Below are positions 10,240 through 52,839 of a stretch of 64,000 nucleotides of DNA, piece after piece. The position numbers and the translations under genes were made by a program. Location: positions 1-64,000 of the forward strand of contig JAPDFW010000145.1 in assembly GCA_028826165.1 (NCBI GenBank), read 5' to 3'. Below the pieces are notes generated by a model that was not told the DNA's origin, did not search any database, and was given only the letters and a program-made list of their open reading frames with translations. How positions within the stretch are numbered: position 1 is the stretch's first letter; each line of letters starts with the position of its first letter. This DNA is from Anaeramoeba ignava BMAN. Taxonomy: Eukaryota; Protista; Anaeramoebae.

Positions 10240-12322
10240 CTAATTTTCATCTGATGATTCTTTTTCTGCATTTATTGGAACAAAAAATCTTCGTTGTTGC
10301 TGTTGCTGAATAACTTTGTAAGTTGAATGATCTTCTTTATTAACCAAATCTATATTTTGGTTGCCTCTATAATTTTGCTCTTCAGTTTCTGTTTGTTGAA
10401 ATTGCTCAGAAAATTCAGAGAATTGAAGCTTCTTTTTGCTCTTCATTTTTGGTTTTTGGTGTTTTAAAAAAGTAGTTGATTTTGATTTTGATTTTGATTT
10501 TGATTTTCGATTTCGATTTTGATTTTGATTTTGATTTTGGTTTTGATTTTGATTTTCGATTTCGATTTCGATTTTGATTTTGATTTTGATTTTGATTTTG
10601 ATTTTGATTTTGATTTTGATTTTGATTTTGGTTTTGATTTTGATTTTGATTTTGGTTTTGATTTTGGTTTTGGTTTTGGTTTTGATTTTGATTTTGATTT
10701 TGATTTTGATTTTGATTTTGATTTTGATTTTGATTTTGATTTTGATTTTGGTTTTGGTTCTAGTTCTACTTCTACTTCGGGTTCTATTTCTTGTTCTGAT
10801 TGTGATTGCGATTCTGATCTTGAATTTGAATTTGAATTTGATTTTGAATTTGAAATTTGAAATTGAAATAGATTGTGTTTGCGATTTTGAATTTGAATTT
10901 GATTTTGATTTTGAATTTGAAATTGAAATAGATTGTGTTTGCGATTTTGATTTTGATTTTGATTTTGATTTTGATTTTGATTTTGATTTGGAAATATATT
11001 CTTCTTTTCCATTTTCATTTATATCAGGTATTCTGGATTGGGATCGTGTCTGAATGCGAGCAAGTCTTCTAGATGTATTTGATTCATTTCTTTTTGGTAA
11101 AAAAACTCTTCTTTGGCTTCGGTAATTTGAGCGGTTATTGGCATGAGTATTATTAGAAAGATTATTGGTAAAATAATGATGTTGATTATTATTATTATTG
11201 TTGTTGGTGATGGTGGTCGTGTTGCTTTTATTCCTATCGTTGTTTAGATTATCATTTGTAATATTTGAAATATGACTAATATCAAAAGAATATAATTTCG
11301 TTTTTGTTTTTTTTTTTTTTTTTTGTTTTTGTTTTTTTACTTATTTCTCCTTTGATTTTGGATTAACTTTTGTTTTTTCACTTCAGGATCGTTTTCTTGA
11401 TGAAGTATATGCAAATTTTCCTCCATATTAACAAGTGTGGGATTGGTTCTTTTTGGGGGATTATTATTCCTTCTAGTTTGTTTCCAATCAAGAATTTCCT
11501 TATTAATATTTTCTTCCAGATATTGTTCTGATGCGTTATTCACACATCTAGAATATATGTATCTTCTTTTTTCACCTTCTCGGATATTATTTGCGCATCT
11601 CTTAAATATTTCTAGAGTTCCAAGATCGCGCATTTCGTTTTCGCAAGGACAAATATGTGGTTTACTTTTGTATTGAAAGCATAATGAACACTTTTTTTTT
11701 TGTGAAGAATTTTGGCTCTCTCGACCATCACCTTGATGATCTTGGTTAGTTTGGATTTTTGCTTTTGTTTTCTTTTATATATATATATATATATTTCAAA
11801 AGAAAAATTACCTAATTCCTGTTCTCGACGCATTCTCCTCTGTTCACCTGAATATGGAGAGATATTTCTTCTTGTATTTTCATTTACATATGTGTGATTC
11901 GAGAAGACTTGATCAATTTCGGATTCATTCTCTTCATAAGATCTTTCCAAAAAGGGGAAGTTATCGAGGGAATTATCCATATCTGTTTCATAAAAATGTT
12001 CATCTCCTAAAATATGGGATGAATTCTCAAAGAGTGGAGGAATTGGAGGTTTCATATCTTCGTTATTTTGATTTCTTAAAATTTCAATGGCTTTCAAAAA
12101 AGCAGTTGCATCTATAAAATAACTTCTCCAAAGTTGTGTGACAATTTCAATACTTTCTGCAGTTGAATATGTTTGAACCGAACCTATAATTTTGAATCTT
12201 AATAAGCAATTCACAATGGTTTCACTTTGGTAACCTAGTGAAAAAATCATTTGGAGTTCCTTCTTTAATTCCTGAAAAGTCTCTTCCTCGTTTTCGTTAT
12301 TTTCATCAAGTTCAATTTCCAT
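10240..12322 (-). CDS. Spliced passenger gene of unknown function (N-terminal helical domain, CxxC-x7-HxC motif, Asn- and Ser/Lys-rich low-complexity tail; apparent frameshifts in the repeat tract)
   Basis: ATG at 12322 (MEIELDENNE...). Intron 1 at 11811-11741 (GTAATT...ACTAACCAAG) joins ...RREQEL in frame to DHQGDGRESQNSSQKKKCSLCFQYKSKPHICPCENEMRDLG (ORF 11337-11633). Intron 2 at 11340-11276 (GTAAAA...ATTAG) continues NHISNITNDNLNNDRNK...RIPDINENGKEEYISKSKS. Frame slips occur inside the (TCAAAA)n tract. The last segment is ...STTFLKHQKPKMKSKKK...SSDEN-stop at 10240. Confidence 0.65.
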
Positions 12323-12448
12323 GTTAAAGCAAAAAAAAATGAAAACACAAAAAAATGAAAACAAAAAAATGAAAACAAAAAAATGAAAAACAAAAATGAA
12401 AAACAAAAATGAAAACAAAAATGAAAACAAAATGAAATATATTTTCAT

Positions 12449-13595
12449 TTATTTTTTCAAAAATTCATAATCTTTTTCAAAATAGCATTGAGCATCTTGC
12501 GTGGAATTAAATTTCTGAACAAGATCTTGCCATGTTTGGAAAGGATTTTCAAGAAATTCTTTTCGATAACTTGCTAAAGTACGCTTTAGCCAACCAAATC
12601 CCATTTCGATTGGGTTGAGTTCTGGGGAATATGGTGGAAGGTAAATAATTAAGTGATTGAATTCCTGATAATATCCTTTGACAAGGTTATCCACAGAATG
12701 ATGGATAGAGCAATTATCCATGACTACTGCAGACGATTCTGATAGAAGTGGAAGCAAAACTTCGATCATAAATTGTGCAAATTTAACTCCATTAATTGAA
12801 TCTTGATATGAATCCATACAAACAAATCCATTATTAGACAGTGCACATATTGAATTTATCCGATGTTTCTCATCTTTTGCAATAAAAGGCGATAAAATTT
12901 CTTCGTTTTTTTTTGTGAAAAGAATCTAAATTCACACCAACTTCATCAATAAAAATAACATTGTTGTCTCCAAATAGATCAAATATTTCTTTCATATATT
13001 CCTTGAATTTGGCATGGAAATGCTTGTTTTCTTCTGTAAACTTTCTCGGAGATCTCAAAGATAGTTTCTTTTTGGAATATTTTAATTGATTCGTGATATA
13101 TTTATATAAACTAGAAATCGAAATATCTAAGCTAAATTCCTCATTTAATTTCGATTGAATTTCTCGAATATATATTGAGGGTTGTTTCTTGATTTCATTT
13201 TTGATAAATTCTTCATGTGTCAATGTTAATTTCTTTTTCGAATTGGAAGTTTTATGTGAATTTTTTATGATCTTTTCTGTTGTTTTGATTATCGCTTCTA
13301 CAAAAATATAATGAAAATCCTCTTCAACCATCATCTCTACTTTTTCCGAAAACAAGGCTGCTACATTTTTTACAAATTTTTGATTAAGTTTATGAATATA
13401 TGAATGCCCTACGCACAAAATTTCTTCCATTTGTGCAAATGTGAGATGAGATTTGTCTTTGAAAATTTCACAAATTAAGTTTTCGCTCAGTAATAATAAT
13501 ACTTGAATTACAACCCTTGGTTCATAGGAATACCCAGGAAAATACACATTGCCTGTTTTGTTTAACTGAAAATTGAAAATTTTCTTTGTGTCCAT
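12449..13595 (-). pseudogene. IS630/Tc1-mariner superfamily DDE transposase (DD36E) split by a frameshift
   Basis: Catalytic motifs IFIDEVG, VVMDNCSIH and YLPPYSPELNPIE, with 36 residues between the second D and the E. HTH-like segment PSIYIREIQSKLNEEFSLDISISSLYKYI. The two ORFs are joined by a shift in the A9 run (12906-12914) into NEEILSPFIAKDEKHRINSICALSNNG. Confidence 0.9.
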
Positions 13596-20651: not shown

Positions 20652-23232
20652 TTGATTTTCAGATTTATTTTTAGATTTATTTTCAGATTTATTTTCAGAT
20701 TTATTTTAAGATTTATTTTCAGATTTATTTTCAGATTTATTTTCAGATTTATTTTCAGATTTATTTTCAGATTTATTTTAAGATTTATTTTTAGATTTAT
20801 TTTAAGATTTTATTTTACAAAGATTTATTTTCAGATTTATTTTAAGATTTATTTTCAGATTTATTTTCAGATTTATTTTCAGATTTATTTTTAAGATTTA
20901 TTTTCAGATTTATTTTCAGATTGATTTTAATTTTAGATTTATTTTTAAGATTTATTTTTAGATTTATTTATTTTATTTTTAGATTTATTTTAAGATTTAT
21001 TTTTTGATTTATTTTCAGATTTATTTTCAGATTTATTTTCAGATTTATTTTCAATTTAGATTTTTTTTTTATTTTCAGATTTATTTTCAGATTTATTTTC
21101 AGATTTATTTTTAGATTTATTTTCAGATTTATTTTCAGATTTATTTTCAGATTTATTTTTAGATTTATTTTCAGATTTATTTTCAGATTTATTTTCAGAT
21201 TTATTTTCAGATTGATTTTCAGATTTATTTTCAGATTTATTTTCAGATTTATTTTCAGATTTATTTTTAGATTGATTTTTAGATTTATTTTCAGATTTAT
21301 TTTCAGATTTATTTTCAGATTTATTTTCAGATTTATTTTCAGATTTATTTTCAGATTTATTTTCAGATTTATTTTCAGATTTATTTTCAGATTTATTTTA
21401 AGATTTATTTTCAGATTTATTTTCAGATTTATTTTCAGATTTATTTTAGATTTATTTTCAGATTTATTTTCAGATTTATTTTCAGATTTATTTTAAGATT
21501 TATTTTCAGATTGATTTTCAGATTTATTTTCAGATTTATTTTCAGATTTATTTTCAGATTTATTTTTAAGATTTATTTTGATTTTTTTTAAGATTTATTT
21601 TCAGATTTATTTTCAGATTTATTTTCAGATTTATTTTCAGATTTATTTTCAGATTTATTTTCAGATTTATTTTTAGATTTATTTTCAGATTTATTTTTAG
21701 ATTTATTTTAAGATTTATTTTCAGATTTATTTTAAGATTTATTTTTAGATTGATTTTCAGATTTATTTTCAGATTTATTTTCAGATTTATTTTTAGATTT
21801 ATTTTAAGATTTATTTTAAGATTTATTTTTAGATTTATTTTCAGATTTATTTTAAGATTTATTTTCAGATTTATTTTCAGATTTATTTTTAGATTTATTT
21901 TCAGATTTATTTTCAGATTTATTTTCAGATTTATTTTCAGATTTATTTTCAGATTTATTTTTAGATTTATTTTCAGATTTATTTTCAGATTTATTTTTAG
22001 ATTTATTTTCAGATTTATTTTCAGATTTATTTTCAGATTTATTTTAAGATTTATTTTAAGATTTATTTTCAGATTTATTTTCAGATTTATTTTTAGATTG
22101 ATTTTCAGATTTATTTTCAGATTTATTTTCAGATTTATTTTCAGATTTATTTTCAGATTTATTTTCAGATTTATTTTTAGATTTATTTTCAGATTTATTT
22201 TCAGATTTATTTTCAGATTTATTTTCAGATTTATTTTCAGATTTATTTTCAGATTTATTTTCAGATTTATTTTAAGATTTATTTTCAGATTTATTTTCAG
22301 ATTTATTTTCAGATTTATTTTCAGATTTATTTTAAGATTTATTTTTAGATTTATTTTCAGATTTATTTTAAGATTTATTTTCAGATTTATTTTCAGATTT
22401 ATTTTCAGATTTATTTTCAGATTTATTTTCAGATTTATTTTCAGATTTATTTTCAGATTTATTTTCAGATTTATTTTCAGATTTATTTTCAGATTTATTT
22501 TCAGATTTATTTTCAGATTTATTTTCAGATTTATTTTCAGATTTATTTTCAGATTTATTTTCAGATTTATTTTCAGATTTATTTTCAGATTTATTTTCAG
22601 ATTTATTTTCAGATTTATTTTCAGATTGATTTTCAGATTTATTTTCAGATTTATTTTCAGATTTATTTTCAGATTTATTTTCAGATTTATTTTCAGATTT
22701 ATTTTCAGATTTATTTTCAGATTTATTTTCAGATTTATTTTTAGATTTATTTTCAGATTTATTTTCAGATTTATTTTAAGATTTATTTTCAGATTTATTT
22801 TCAGATTTATTTTCAGATTTATTTTCAGATTTATTTTCAGATTTATTTTCAGATTGATTTTAAGATTTATTTTCAGATTTATTTTAAGATTGATTTTCAG
22901 ATTTATTTTCAGATTTATTTTCAGATTTATTTTCAGATTTATTTTCAGATTTATTTTTAGATTTATTTTAAGATTTATTTTCAGATTTATTTTCAGATTT
23001 ATTTTCAGATTTATTTTCAGATTTATTTTTAGATTTATTTTAAGATTTATTTTCAGATTTATTTTCAGATTTATTTTCAGATTTATTTTCAGATTTATTT
23101 TCAGATTTATTTTTAGATTTATTTTCAGATTTATTTTCAGATTTATTTTCAGATTTATTTTCAGATTTATTTTCAGATTTATTTTTAGATTTATTTTTAG
23201 ATTTATTTTCAGATTTATTTTCAGATTGATTT
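20652..23232. repeat. 12-bp minisatellite (TTTTCAGATTTA), ~2.6 kb
   Basis: About 215 tandem units. Source of the 494-aa FIFR pseudo-ORF. Confidence 0.97.
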
Positions 23233-23333
23233 GATATTTATTTATTTGGCTTTTAAAAATGATTTAGAAACTATTGAATAAATAATTTACAAAACAAATG
23301 AATTGATTTATTTTCATTTAAGAAGACAAATAA

Positions 23334-26459: not shown

Positions 26460-27062
26460 TTGATTTTCAGATTGATTTTAAGATTTATTTTAAGATTGAT
26501 TTTCAGATTTATTTTCAGATTTATTTTCAGATTTATTTTCAGATTTATTTTCAGATTTATTTTCAGATTTATTTTCAGATTTATTTTCAGATTTATTTTC
26601 AGATTTATTTTCAGATTTATTTTAAGATTTATTTTCAGATTTATTTTCAGATTTATTTTCAGATTTATTTTCAGATTGATTTTCAGATTTATTTTCAGAT
26701 TTATTTTCAGATTTATTTTCAGATTTATTTTCAGATTTATTTTTAGATTTATTTTAAGATTTATTTTCAGATTTATTTTGATTTATTTTCAGATTTATTT
26801 TCAGATTGATTTTCAGATTTATTTTCAGATTTATTTTCAGATTTATTTTCAGATTTATTTTCAGATTTATTTTCAGATTTATTTTCAGATTTATTTTAAG
26901 ATTTATTTTCAGATTTATTTTCAGATTTATTTTCAGATTTATTTTCAGATTGATTTTCAGATTTATTTTAAGATTGATTTTCAGATTGATTTTCAGATTG
27001 ATTTTCAGATTTATTTTCAGATTTATTTTCAGATTTATTTTCAGATTGATTTTCAGATTGAT
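26460..27062. repeat. 12-bp minisatellite (TTTTCAGATTTA)
   Basis: Tandem units with the same flanks as the other three arrays. Confidence 0.95.
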
Positions 27063-27332
27063 TTGATATTTATTTATTTGGCTTTTAAAAATGATTTAGA
27101 AACTATTGAATGAATAATTTACAAAACAAATGAATTGATTTATTTTCATTTAAGAAGACAAATAACACATAATTTATATTTATATTTATATTTATATTTA
27201 TATTTATATTTATATTTATATTTATATTTATATTTATATTTATATTTATATTTATATTTATATTTATATTTATATTTCTATTTCTATTTCCAATAAATAA
27301 AATAAAAAGAAATGATTTTTTATTTATTTATT

Positions 27333-49617: not shown

Positions 49618-50754
49618 ATTAATAATAATTTATTCATAATTTATTCATAATTTAATTTATTTTTTATTTTTATTTTTAATTTATGTTCTTAATTTTGAAA
49701 TTTATTTTTATATTTGATATATATATTTTTAGTATTTTGTAAATTAAAATATTTATAAATAAATATTTATTTTAATTTATTTTAATTTTAATTTAATTTA
49801 ATTTTGTTTTTTATTAATTTAGAATTAATAATCAATTTTTAAAATATAATATATATTTTATCTTCTTTTTTTTCTTCTTCTATTTATTTATTTATTTATT
49901 TATTTATTTGCAATTTCATTTTCAATTTCAATTTAATTTTCATTTTCATTTTACAATTTAATTTCTATTTTCATTTTAATTTTCAATTTAGTTTAATTTT
50001 AATTCAATTTAATTCATATTTTTATATTTTATAAATTAAATAAAATATTTTTAATTGTAATTTATTTTATTTTCATTTTATTTTATGTGTAAATGAATTT
50101 TGAAAAATCAAAAATAAAATTAATAAAATAAATAAAAATAAATTTTGAAAATAATAATTGAATTATTAATAAAATAAAAATATTAAAATTAATTAATTAA
50201 TTAATTATAAATCAAAATTTATTATTATTAATTATTAAAATAAATAAATTTGAAATGAAAAATAATAAATAAAAATGAATATTAATTATATTATATAAAT
50301 ATAATAAATGAATATATAATTAATAAATATATAATAATAAATATCAATTCAAAATATATGTAGTATAAAATGTTTAAAAAATAAAAATAAATTTTTAAAA
50401 GTATAAATCAAAATAAATAATATTTTTTTTATCAACTTAATTTCAATTTATATAAATATAAATCAAAAAAAAAAAATAAAAAAAAAATCAAATTTTATCC
50501 TCGAAAAATTGAAACAATAAAATTTTATTTTTCAAAAATTTAATTAAAGACCCGGAAAAATAAAATTTCATTTTTATTGACGGGGGCGAATTTATTTTCT
50601 GCCATTTGGGGAAAATAAAATTTTATTTTTCCAGGTCTTTTTCCCCTTTTTAAAATTGAAATTTCTCCTTTTTATTTCAAAATAAAATGATATTTGAGAA
50701 ATTTGGTTTTTTATTGAAAAGTGAGTAAATTCCAAAAAATCCTAAAAAAAACCA

Positions 50755-50868
50755 TGAAGAAAATGAAAATGAAGAAAATGAAAATGAAGAAAATGAAAAT
50801 GAAGAAAATGAAAATGAAGAAAATGAAAATGAAGAAAATGAAAATGAAGAAAATGAAGAAAATGAAAA
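50755..50868. repeat. 15-bp tandem repeat (GAAGAAAATGAAAAT)n inside the Crypton
   Basis: About 7 copies, downstream of the YR stop codon. Confidence 0.9.
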
Positions 50869-50912
50869 TCAGTAAAAATCCAAGAATGAGATCCCAAGCA
50901 TTCAACCTACTG

Positions 50913-52103
50913 TTACTTCTTTTCATCAGGGTTCAAGAATGTTGATTTCCAAGTTGTTGCCATGTCTTTCAATGATCTCTTTCGGTCGTGTACTCCAATG
51001 TTGATTGATATAATCGAGTTTGAGGGATTTCCAATTGAGATCCCATTGGGAAATAAAAGTGGAAGGTTTTGGTTTGAGTTGTTCTCTTTTTGATCTAATT
51101 TAAGCTGCAATGCATTATCAATTGCTTTTTCTTTCTCTAAACAAACTCTTTTATATAATTGGAGAGATGATTCTGATTTATGCCCACTTTTTAATTTCAT
51201 AATTTCTTGATCTTGGATCCCTTGGTTGTATAGCCTCGATACACAAGTTACACGAAAGGAATGTAGACCAATTTTCTTATTAATATTAACTTTTTTGCAT
51301 AGCTCTTGTAAATGTCTTCTCAATGTAGGTGCTTTAATTGCTTGGTTTGTAAGGGGATTTCCTGTAAAGTTTTTCTTTTTGAATGATCTAAAAAGCCGAT
51401 TGTCTGGATTCGTGGGTAACTCTGATCGAAATTTCCAATACTTGCTCAAAATTAAATATGGATCTTTCGGTGAATCTGAAAAAGGAAATAGTTTGACTGT
51501 TTTTGGTTCAAAGTTAGTCACTCCAATTGTTGCCTTATTGTTTTTGCATTCACCTTGTACATACTCTATAAAATCTTGACCATCAATGTGCCCAAAATGA
51601 ATTTGTGTCAATGTCAGATCTGCGATCTCTTGTCCTCTCAAACAAAAATGGATTCCAACTACCATCACCGTTGCAATTGTCAAATGTTTTGGATTTTCTA
51701 ACCTTAGATATTCCATCAATTTAGTTTGTTCAGCTTCTTTCAAATCTTGATAATGCGAAGTAAAACAGTTTCCAGCTGCAATAATTTCTTTTAACCGGTT
51801 TTCTACGGTGTTCTTGATGTCCTCAAATTCAGAATTTTTTAAATCTACGCTAATTAATTTCTTTTGATTCAAATACGATAAAAGGTTTGAGCAATAGGAC
51901 CGATAAGTTTTAAGTTTGTATTCCTTTCCGTTACTCCTTTTTAATTGAATAAAAAATCGACAGATGGTGTCTTTGAGATCTATTTCTTCGAAAGTAACAT
52001 TCTCAGCTTTCAAAAATCTTTCCCATTTCTTTCCCATAACAGAAATCGATTTTTGTGTATTTAAAGGGATTTTTTTTTTTTTGTACTCCTCAACAGATGT
52101 CAT
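50913..52103 (-). CDS. Tyrosine recombinase, DUF3504/Crypton type (396 aa)
   Basis: Complete R-K-HxxR-H-Y set: FCLRGQE, CKNN, HSFR, SGHKS, LQLYKR. The N-terminal pattern NT...W..F...FF...NGKEY...T is typical of DUF3504-type (CryptonA-like, ZMYM/QRICH1/KCTD1-related) recombinases. The ORF is uninterrupted. Confidence 0.93.
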   Translation of the reverse strand: MTSVEEYKKKKIPLNTQKSISVMGKKWERFLKAENVTFEEIDLKDTICRFFIQLKRSNGKEYKLKTYRSYCSNLLSYLNQKKLISVDLKNSEFEDIKNTVENRLKEIIAAGNCFTSHYQDLKEAEQTKLMEYLRLENPKHLTIATVMVVGIHFCLRGQEIADLTLTQIHFGHIDGQDFIEYVQGECKNNKATIGVTNFEPKTVKLFPFSDSPKDPYLILSKYWKFRSELPTNPDNRLFRSFKKKNFTGNPLTNQAIKAPTLRRHLQELCKKVNINKKIGLHSFRVTCVSRLYNQGIQDQEIMKLKSGHKSESSLQLYKRVCLEKEKAIDNALQLKLDQKENNSNQNLPLLFPNGISIGNPSNSIISINIGVHDRKRSLKDMATTWKSTFLNPDEKK

Positions 52104-52839
52104 AAGAGACGAATGAAAATCAAAAAAAAATTTTTTTTTTCTTTTGAATCCCGAATTAGAAAAATTTTTTCTTAAATAGTTTTCTCTTAAATTTTTTTTT
52201 CTCCTTTTTTCGATTTTTTTCTCCTTTTATTTTTTTTTTATTTTTTTTTTATTTTTTATTTTTTGGATCAGATCAATTTTTTGAGGATAAAAATACTATT
52301 TGCCCTCATTCGGAAAAATAAAATCATTTTTGAATCTCGATTTTTAGCTAAACCATCCGCTCGCCAGGGCTCGCTAAGATAATTTTGGCTCGTAAACGAG
52401 CCACCGCTAAAAATCTCGATTGCAAAAATAAAATTTTATTTTTCCAAATTTGAGCAAATAGTTTATCTTTATTCTAATTTATATATTTTAAACATTTTTC
52501 AATAATAAATATTAAATCAAAATATATATTCAAAATTAATATAATAATGGAATCAAATTTATTATCAATATTATATTAATAAATAATATAATAAATATAA
52601 TATCAGAATAATAAATATATTAATAAAAATATATTTTATTAAATATTCTTTTTTTTGGATTTGATTTTTATTTTGTAATTCTTTTTATATTTTTTAGAAT
52701 AATTATTTATTTCTTTTCATTTATTATTTTATTCAAAATTTCATTTTTAATTTCATTTACAATTTAATTTATTTTAAATATAATTTAATTTCATTTCCAT
52801 TTTCATTTTCAATTTCATTTTTTCATATTTATATATATA

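Follow-up and report, generated by a model that had tools for sequence, protein, structure and literature searches.

The element analyzed here, found in a 64,000-nt stretch of an Anaeramoeba ignava contig (hereafter the window), is a small autonomous Crypton-type DNA transposon whose coding capacity consists of a tyrosine recombinase alone. It carries an internal, inverted copy of its own circle junction beside one end, a layout for which the only other known examples are DIRS retrotransposons and single-strand recombination sites of bacteria. The best explanation, to which we give about even credence, is a Crypton with a palindromic attachment site that acts folded back on itself. Judging from its genomic copies, the element has apparently been active recently. 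Its features, in window coordinates, are as follows:

50494–50498, + strand: left TTTAT, the 5-bp crossover core on the attL side (single copy in empty sites)
50499–50515, + strand: left terminal arm A (CCTCGAAAAATTGA...), complementary to A'; the 17 nt of the junction alignment right of the joint
50511–50641, + strand: left subterminal region with three ~22-nt palindromic motifs and a hairpin (repeat search, self-palindrome)
50736–50879, + strand: 15-bp tandem repeat, downstream of the recombinase stop codon
50913–52103, - strand: tyrosine recombinase gene, 396 aa, uninterrupted (ORF, Pfam)
52273–52332, + strand: internal complementary region, which copies the circle junction imperfectly and in inverted orientation, made up of A' (52273–52286), the inverted core ATAAA (52287–52291), the spacer AATA (52292–52295), and B' (52296–52332)
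52333–52425, + strand: palindrome loop, with the conserved apex motif TCCGCTCG-N6-CTCGCTAAGAT (52356–52380) and a G+C mini-hairpin (52386–52403)
52426–52467, + strand: right terminal arm B (...GAGCAAATAGTTTATC), complementary to B'
52468–52472, + strand: right TTTAT core on the attR side (filled site compared with empty sites)
Satellite target of the element: ATCAAATTTTATTCTAA

The mobile unit comprises 1974 bp, with a unique part (50499–52467) flanked by TTTAT on each side. The original prediction had placed the ends at 50493–52472, which is correct to within the core, since the empty site contains one TTTAT and the filled site contains TTTAT at both 50494–50498 and 52468–52472; the base-exact unit was obtained from a second, near-identical copy on contig C107 together with the empty sites. 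At least 10 paralogous empty sites with one TTTAT are present in the window, in addition to the C107 comparison, and all 10 of those examined in the window read ...ATCAAATTTTATTCTAATTT.... A third insertion remnant is likewise located at TTTAT. Integration is a conservative crossover in the 5-bp TTTAT common to the element and its AT-rich satellite target. The two cores of the C107 copy are unequal, TTTAT and TTAAT, so a crossover heteroduplex fits better than a target-site duplication; a duplication of the DDE type is unlikely for this reason and because the outermost ends are not inverted repeats of one another. A short direct repeat in the 4–6-bp range at the termini, present once in the empty site, with TIRs (terminal inverted repeats) and LTRs both absent, is the arrangement by which Cryptons are recognized, and the element shows it. 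The differences between the window and C107 copies are nearly all in homopolymer or microsatellite length, and the 15-bp tandem repeat differs in copy number between them, with a 21-nt indel at 50848. An alternative raised with the original prediction, namely a simple TIR element (50493–52292) followed by a separate hairpin or MITE insertion, is excluded, because a search for independent copies of the hairpin module found none and the empty sites match the outer ends. The right end is 52467/52472 in both copies and against all empty sites, and the whole 1974-bp unit has moved, distal hairpin included.

The recombinase gene is the sole long protein-like ORF in the element; the one other ORF of at least 100 aa (117 aa) lies on the opposite strand inside it. 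The protein matches Pfam Phage_integrase (PF00589, 5e-11) and contains the catalytic R...H-x-x-R...Y signature of tyrosine recombinases. An alignment of 10 proteins shows no variation at R156, K187, H281, R284, H308, or Y317, and the catalytic R-K-H-R-H-Y set is intact. An annotated A. ignava protein is 94% identical to the 396-aa recombinase. ORF and Pfam analyses found neither a reverse transcriptase (RT) nor any further transposition enzyme inside the 1974-bp unit or in three sister families (B, B2, and C), and no ORF or domain for the RT/RNase H that accompanies the recombinase in DIRS elements occurs in the element, which bears out its original description as an RT-less Crypton-type element. 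Outside Anaeramoeba, the closest proteins have QRICH1, DUF3504, and Phage_integrase domains. QRICH1 is matched by families B (above the curated cut-off) and B2 (below the cut-off), and the only Pfam match of the window element (family A) is Phage_integrase, DUF3504 and QRICH1 not being reached. The recombinase appears to be related to CryptonA/QRICH1-type proteins, and among Cryptons the CryptonA/DUF3504-QRICH1 group offers the closest comparison.

The circle junction was reconstructed as the right end, TTTAT, and the left end, and was aligned to the reverse complement of the interior. Read directly, 52273–52292 is the reverse complement of the left end (50493–50512) at 19 of 20 positions, and 52295–52324 is complementary to the right end (52433–52462) at 26 of 30, a match also found by repeat search. 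As originally proposed, the joined ends are complementary to the internal copy along its length: the junction alignment picks 52273–52324 and reaches 37 nt to one side of the joint and 17 nt to the other, and both extremities are thus matched side by side within 52273–52332. The small bulge expected beside the core is present as well, the junction reading ...AATAG TTTATC TTTAT CCTCG and the inverted internal copy ...AATAG TATT TTTAT CCTCA. The plain alignment score is 67, compared with 24 ± 3 for shuffles. Plain scoring is weak against real satellite sequence, in which 117 of 600 pseudo-junctions scored at least 47, and the alignment was therefore re-scored with composition-aware weights, giving 43. 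Under these weights, no junction-spanning match scored above 19 in 1000 pseudo-elements drawn from real AT-rich DNA or in 400 wrong circular permutations of real elements; on these controls (0/1400), an origin of the match by chance from AT-rich composition was rejected.

With the ends joined, as they would be in the presumed excised circle, one imperfect palindrome of ~210 nt starts at 52262, crosses the joint, and runs into the left end; the crossover core is located inside one of its arms, 17–20 nt from the palindrome base. The folds and the comparison of the junction with the internal copy both place the crossover within the stem, with unpaired bases beside it. A search with the apex-motif pattern returned five matches in 42.8 Mb and none in the control. 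Four of them are in YR elements already identified and the fifth is a new partial copy, on C76, of a family represented on C60; in these searches, the motif is specific to palindrome-bearing YR elements. The ~22-nt motif of the left subterminal region (50511–50532, 50554–50575, and 50609–50630) recurs at 52312–52333 (read by eye) and 52422–52443, and the left subterminal hairpin is formed by 50538–50558 pairing with 50621–50641.

The three further A. ignava families have 27–38% protein identity, unrelated non-coding sequence, and a similar layout. Family C (C61; core TTTATT) has the same layout, its ends fixed by many satellite empty sites, as does family B2 (C82; core TTAT). Family B (C104/C78) shows it more weakly: the match is weak under strict scoring, and the centre of the internal copy fails to reproduce the core. 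The possibility that relatives lack the internal complementary region had been named with the original prediction as something that would refute it; the region is found in C and B2 and, in weaker form, in B. In each of the four families, the circle-junction region folds with DNA parameters into one long hairpin (-50 to -66 kcal/mol, z of -10 to -15), and the complementarity of the arms is continuous for 55–110 bp to the loop apex, far past the recombinase footprint. In families A, C, and B2, the internal copy retains the core, falls 2 nt short of the junction's length, and shows T in place of the junction's C directly 5' of the core. The internal copy adjoins a terminus in all families, the one upstream of the ORF in A and C and the one downstream in B and B2, and because the side varies relative to the ORF, the copy is tied to the element end and not to a promoter. 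An independent site holds a 695-bp non-autonomous derivative of B2 that has kept the left end, internal copy, hairpin, and right end, and its deletion breakpoint is at the start of the internal copy.

The check proposed at the outset was for covariation between the internal region and the termini. No compensatory double change was seen within a family: all five differences between the two B2 copies compared are on the internal arm or loop. Across the four families, G.T and A.C mismatches number 11 and 12 overall (1:8 in A and C, 10:4 in B and B2), without consistent strand bias or relation to the coding strand. Differences between families cannot separate a requirement for pairing from two copies of one protein-binding site. 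In the C60 family, the hairpin, apex motif, and right end are conserved in the second copy on C76, and a search for its left-end partner found none. CryptonA-like contigs in ENA ERZ25039471 carry 100–130-nt palindromes with a similar apex beside YR genes; neither element limits nor a far-end partner of the palindrome were found in these contigs, and one ERZ26695902 locus has no clear palindrome equivalent. A diverged family-A-like fragment on C35 ends just before the internal copy, and family-B-like pieces on C89, C141, and C104:1017935 are degraded.

If a folded palindromic site is indeed used, the palindrome would serve as the attachment site in the form of a hairpin in single-stranded DNA or an extruded cruciform, and the recombinase would act on the duplex of the junction strand and the internal copy. 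Because the crossover core is inside one arm, integration splits the palindrome. The outer 17–20 nt of the split arm land at the far (left) end of the element, and the sequence complementary to this outer arm, together with that complementary to the right end, remains internal and makes up the internal complementary region. Beside the core, the 2-nt bulge and the C.A mismatch, both conserved, may favor exchange of one strand over the other, as they do in integron attC and CTXphi attP. Once the element is integrated, A–A' and B–B' pairing could draw the ends together on the internal splint, allowing excision or copy-out. The element may use a single-stranded substrate and copy-out transposition. 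No process is known to us that would supply single-stranded DNA to a eukaryotic element lacking an RT, which counts against such folding, and the genome assembly contains no assembled circle junction or tandem dimer within 3 mismatches. A more far-reaching proposal, which we regard as unlikely, is a eukaryotic Crypton lineage with a folded single-stranded site like attC or that of CTXphi, in which a strand would be circularized on the internal splint, exchanged as a single strand, and completed by replication, giving copy-out without reverse transcription; the ITRs and internal complementary region (ICR) of DIRS would then have been inherited from such a Crypton ancestor and not invented for reverse transcription.

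The internal region might instead be a second, inverted recombinase-binding site in double-stranded DNA, with no folding of strands, a possible reading that we hold to be somewhat improbable. The recombinase bound to A and A' (and to B and B') would bridge the DNA, and the site could serve attL–attR synapsis for excision, an accessory or architectural role, inversion of the body relative to the hairpin module, or titration of the enzyme. Tyrosine recombinases normally use duplex sites with inverted binding elements around a 6–8-bp spacer (PMC3212892), the 2-bp shorter spacer would leave the internal copy competent for binding only, and neither wobble bias nor compensatory change is seen. The opposite orientation of the ORF relative to the hairpin module in A/C and B/B2 is also what A–A' inversion would yield. 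Against this reading, the complementarity continues over 55–110 bp to the loop apex, well past any binding site, the same bulge and mismatch beside the core are found in three families, and long palindromes in duplex DNA are costly to maintain unless used.

Roles for the palindrome outside recombination, such as a promoter, terminator, insulator, RNAi-feeding UTR hairpin, origin for circle replication or second-strand synthesis, guide-like RNA pairing with the junction, or neutral relic of palindrome formation, appear decidedly unlikely as its explanation. The internal copy occupies the 5' leader of families A and C and the 3' trailer of families B and B2, and so is probably transcribed. Imperfect palindromes also serve as single-strand origins in rolling-circle plasmids, which speaks for a role of this kind. 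Against it, the conserved position is that relative to the terminus and crossover and not to the gene, a transcript of an integrated copy has both A:A' halves only if it spans the whole element, and conservation in four families and a non-autonomous derivative argues against a neutral relic. DIRS-like retro-mobilization in trans, in which an end-to-end transcript would be copied into cDNA by the RT of another element, the cDNA ends splinted by the internal region, and the circle integrated by the recombinase, is highly improbable. It draws on the layout of DIRS-1, whose 88-nt ICR is essential for retrotransposition via single-stranded cDNA (PMC7192593), on the intronless recombinase ORF, on the C-terminal CX2CX4HX4C knuckle of the family B recombinase, and on active-looking reverse transcriptases in the genome. 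Yet the two RT loci examined are LINE-type with an APE endonuclease and not DIRS-type, none of the 17 RT matches in the genome is inside a YR element, and the elements are ~2 kb long without gag, RT, or RNase H. Moreover, transcription of the gene in families A and C leads away from the hairpin end, and a normal mRNA would therefore not include the right arm.

Among the DNA transposons of eukaryotes, no class is less well understood than the Cryptons, and to our knowledge their cis-acting sites have been described as a 4–6-bp repeat and nothing further. A conserved palindromic site with an internal junction copy provides a concrete, testable cis-architecture for them, and the putative palindromic attachment site suggests a possible copy-out route. 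As the layout is otherwise on record only for DIRS elements and bacterial single-strand sites, palindrome-bearing Cryptons may move in an unrecognized way. Crypton ends are notoriously difficult to delimit, and the combination of a terminal arm, an internal inverted junction, and a ~100-nt loop with a CTCG-N-CTCG apex could help to locate them exactly in annotation. In structure, the layout equals that of the DIRS-1 ICR, which experiments have shown to be essential (PMC7192593), and this opens a route to testing the descent of DIRS termini from a recombinase-only ancestor.

The element resembles Cryptons (Goodwin et al. 2003; Kojima and Jurka 2011, PMC3212892) in its ~2 kb size, coding for a tyrosine recombinase only, R-H-R-Y chemistry, 4–6-bp direct repeat that flanks the element on both sides and occurs once in the empty site, and site-biased insertion. 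According to published descriptions, PMC3212892 among them, Cryptons lack terminal inverted repeats, and those of animals lack terminal repeats altogether. The inverted internal junction copy and the long palindrome at the joint set the element apart from published Cryptons, in whose descriptions we found no report of either. Active Chlamydomonas Cryptons excise cleanly yet increase in copy number, which has been called "a complex mode of transposition" (PMC9977147).

With integron attC and CTXphi attP(+), the element shares an imperfect palindrome whose stem holds the crossover, next to unpaired bases, so that the integrated unit starts with the tail of one arm and has the rest of the site at the other end, and two inverted half-sites ~90–130 nt apart. 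Those systems are bacterial, draw their substrates from conjugation, phage, or replication, and rely on IntI or on XerCD of the host; here, the host is eukaryotic, the Crypton-type enzyme is self-encoded, folding is predicted from the sequence, and the far-end arm is 17–45 nt long and not 6–7 nt as in attC and CTXphi attP. The integrative elements SE-6283 and SE-6945 of Vibrio, which circularize in a strand-biased manner (PMC9345347), show the kind of copy-out that a folded site would allow. They are bacterial, have four core genes including two recombinases, and carry imperfect terminal inverted motifs in place of an internal junction copy.

In DIRS-1, a segment inside the element, next to one of the terminal regions, is complementary to the outermost sequence of each end, the two matches lying side by side (PMC7192593), and an ICR of this type therefore equals an inverted circle junction. 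The element differs from DIRS-1 in having no RT, RNase H, gag, or methyltransferase, in an internal copy that is ~52–85 nt long and imperfect, with a core bulge and mismatch, compared with 88 nt and exact, in "terminal repeats" that are ~100-nt hairpin arms and not ~300-bp ITRs, and in that the internal copy can be upstream of the gene. It shares with DIRS-1 an internal segment that adjoins one terminus and is complementary to both extremities, a short core common to element and target that flanks the insert, and insertion into repeat-rich DNA.

The family A element is a recombinase-only DNA transposon of the Crypton type. Its ends are defined to the base, its crossover core is 5 bp long, and its targets are satellites. 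It has a conserved palindromic junction region, the inner half of which is the internal complementary region (ICR), an inverted and imperfect copy of the circle junction formed by the right end, the core and the left end. Its features on the window's contig (C146; other C-numbers denote other contigs of the same 42.8-Mb assembly), with a remnant elsewhere, are as follows.

50499-52467: unique sequence of the family A element
50494-50498 and 52468-52472: TTTAT cores of the filled site
50913-52103, minus strand: tyrosine recombinase ORF, 396 aa, the only long protein-like ORF of the element
52273-52332: internal copy of the circle junction
50736-50879: 15-bp tandem repeat downstream of the stop codon
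52104-52272: long T runs in the 5' leader
C131:54851-54905 (L060), minus strand: 47-bp family A remnant within a ~49-bp satellite

A whole-genome search recovered a second full copy on C107. When the two copies were aligned with their flanks, similarity began at TTTTATCCTCG and stopped at ...AGTTTATCTT, and the outer flanks were unrelated. The empty site, rebuilt by fusing both flanks of the window element, was matched at 93-97% identity over 300 bp by at least 10 further sites of the window (e.g., 31878, 33448, 36377, 37988, 41059, 42623, 46853, 56169, 58027, and 62958 within 30000-64000). All matching empty sites show ...ATCAAATTTTATTCTAATTT..., indicating that the target has a single TTTAT, and the mobile unit thus comprises 1974 bp. 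The cores of the C107 copy differ (TTTAT on the left, TTAAT on the right), which fits a conservative crossover better than a duplicated target. A conservative crossover within a short near-identical stretch is the model put forward for Cryptons (PMC3212892; PMC9977147). In the C131 remnant, the left palindromic motif is joined straight to the right end (...GAGCAAATAGTTTATC + TTTAT), the left end has lost its first 8 nt at an AAAAAT microhomology, and the sequence terminates in ...GTTTATC TTTAT in a satellite different from those of the other copies. The remnant represents a third insertion at a TTTAT site and records a deletion that runs from one copy of the palindromic motif to another. The C146 and C107 copies diverge almost exclusively in homopolymer and microsatellite lengths, nearly all of it in the tandem repeat and the T runs, indicating that transposition was recent. 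The frameshifts of the C107 ORF sit in homopolymers, and its frameshifts and stop codons may be assembly errors.

The window is very AT-rich (5-10% G+C except in a few islands) and consists mostly of satellite arrays, in which several AT-rich satellites form a higher-order repeat. All placeable Crypton insertions (families A, B, B2, and C) occupy (A/G)T-TTTAT-like sites within satellite arrays, suggesting that the elements prefer or tolerate satellite DNA as a target. Copies or fragments of LINE-type (APE + RT) retrotransposons occur within a few kb of several recombinase loci (C67:15750-16334; C61:374834-375157; C35:486144-486362), a proximity likely due to repeat-rich neighbourhoods rather than to composite elements. 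Window ORFs of 217-494 aa in the G+C-richer islands (21750-23234, plus strand; 11612-12448, 12870-13595, minus strand; 26460-27113, plus strand) gave no Pfam match at E ≤ 0.01.

The 396-aa protein is 94% identical to an annotated A. ignava hypothetical protein and matches Pfam Phage_integrase at 5e-11; a 117-aa ORF lies inside its gene on the opposite strand. R156, K187, H281, R284, H308, and Y317 do not vary when the protein is aligned with four further recombinases of A. ignava and five foreign relatives, and they make up the complete catalytic set of tyrosine recombinases. An exhaustive profile search returned 785 relatives, of which the closest from outside Anaeramoeba combine QRICH1, DUF3504 and Phage_integrase domains, the CryptonA signature. 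The proteins of the A. ignava families B and B2 match QRICH1 themselves, B above and B2 below the curated cut-off. The family B recombinase (477 aa) ends in a CX2CX4HX4C motif of the retroviral zinc-knuckle type (L041 1093-1150, from C104), which Pfam zinc-knuckle models matched below cut-offs only. Such knuckles usually bind single-stranded nucleic acid.

The original prediction held that two adjacent internal segments are complementary to the two ends of the element, and both pairings were confirmed. By direct reading, 52273-52292 matches the reverse complement of 50493-50512 at 19/20 positions, and 52295-52324 pairs with 52433-52462 at 26/30, a match also present in the repeat search (I10). 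When the joined ends (45 nt + 45 nt) were aligned to the reverse complement of the element interior, the best match was 52273-52324, crossing the joint, with a score of 67 versus 24 ± 3 for shuffled junctions. Since pseudo-junctions from real satellite DNA often reach equal scores under plain scoring, the test was repeated with weights rewarding G/C matches. Under this strict scoring, family A scored 43, while no joint-spanning score exceeded 19 among 1000 pseudo-elements (from the window, LINE loci and another contig) or 400 wrong circular permutations of real elements.

A protein search revealed several diverged recombinase loci in the A. ignava genome, three families of which are listed here together with a B2 derivative.

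Family C: C61, 38% identity, core TTTATT, in a ~320-bp satellite
Family B2: C82, 28% identity, core TTAT, in another satellite
Family B: C104 and C78 (copies 99.2% identical), 27% identity, mirror layout
B2 derivative: C64, non-autonomous, 695 bp, with left end, internal copy, hairpin and right end kept

As the original prediction had asked of related elements, families C, B2 and, more weakly, B have an internal copy matching their own ends. Family C, whose ends are fixed by many paralogous empty sites, has a 183-nt palindrome upstream of the ORF, adjoined by 17 nt exactly complementary to the left end and core (strict score 45). In family B2 the palindrome is 201 nt long and lies downstream of the ORF, with an adjoining segment complementary to the left end (strict score 37). 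The internal copy of family B lies near the left end and matches less well (strict score 19), and its centre does not match the core. Non-coding sequence is unrelated among families, yet each internal segment follows the ends of its own family. In the B2 derivative, the deletion breakpoint is the start of the internal copy; flanks 74-76% and element parts 92-96% identical to those of the C82 copy indicate an independent insertion. The two copies of a further family, C60 (on C60 and C76), have the hairpin and right end in common, and a left-end partner was looked for but not found. In both, a long (AAT)n microsatellite also separates the start of the recombinase from the hairpin module (L034 2750-3160 on C60; L071 on C76), so the expansion belongs to the element and is no later local event.

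In the joined form of each of the four families, the stretch running from the internal copy across the joint is predicted under DNA parameters to fold into one long, imperfect hairpin (-50 to -66 kcal/mol; z -10 to -15 versus shuffles). The crossover core lies within the stem, 17-45 nt from the hairpin base, so that on integration one arm loses its outer part to the opposite end of the element. The internal copy of families A, C and B2 includes the core but, immediately 5' of it, falls 2 nt short of the junction, and it carries T where the right end of the element has C; the folded form would thus have a small asymmetric loop and a C·A mismatch at the core edge. This position is T in all attL sites seen and C in all attR sites (the left and right sides of a filled site), which places it outside the exchanged core. 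A conserved motif, (A)TCC(A/G)CTCG, 6-9 nt, CTCG(C/T)TA(A/G)GAT, occupies the loop apex. This pattern has five matches in 42.8 Mb and zero in the control; four are in known elements and the fifth is a new partial C60-family copy on C76.

Palindromes of 100-130 nt also adjoin CryptonA-like genes (QRICH1 + DUF3504 + Phage_integrase) of another organism on metagenomic contigs of ENA ERZ25039471 (L050 3956-4052; L051 1375-1487, 3653-3768, 5553-5671; L052 3797-3921). They are made of repeated ATAAC(C/T)CAC(G/T)(A/C)G units, are 85-89% identical across elements with proteins in different 50%-identity clusters, and have an apex, CCACTCG-N9-CTCG, similar to the Anaeramoeba motif.

We infer from sequence that the palindrome may be the attachment site, acting folded back on itself. 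The main rival is a duplex two-site model, in which the palindrome would serve in protein-bridged synapsis of the ends, in body inversion, or as a binding-only decoy. Between these two models, mismatch types gave no consistent strand bias (11 G·T against 12 A·C overall), and a comparison of the two B2 copies revealed no compensatory changes. No circle junction was found in the 42.8-Mb assembly. The fold-back site is favoured because the complementarity reaches far past a protein footprint, because the bulge and mismatch at the core recur, and because the palindrome is linked to a terminus, not to the gene, and is kept in the non-autonomous copy. A role outside recombination is less likely. The internal copy precedes the gene in families A and C, follows it in B and B2, and is beside a terminus in all, which counts against a promoter-linked function. 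Retro-mobilization in trans is also less likely, and the A. ignava reverse transcriptases examined are LINE-type with an APE endonuclease, none of them inside a recombinase element.

According to the published descriptions consulted (including PMC3212892), terminal inverted repeats are absent from Cryptons and animal Cryptons have no terminal repeats at all, and a full-text literature search found no description of a Crypton with an internal complementary region, hairpin or palindrome of this layout. Single-strand copy-out by tyrosine recombinases is reported for bacterial strand-biased circularizing elements (PMC9345347). The closest structural analogy to the internal copy is the ICR of DIRS-1, a sequence required for retrotransposition and complementary to the two extremities (PMC7192593). 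The closest functional analogies to the palindrome are integron attC and CTXphi attP; an integron cassette starts with bases that are part of its attC site, and the outer arm part likewise lies at the far end of the element here.
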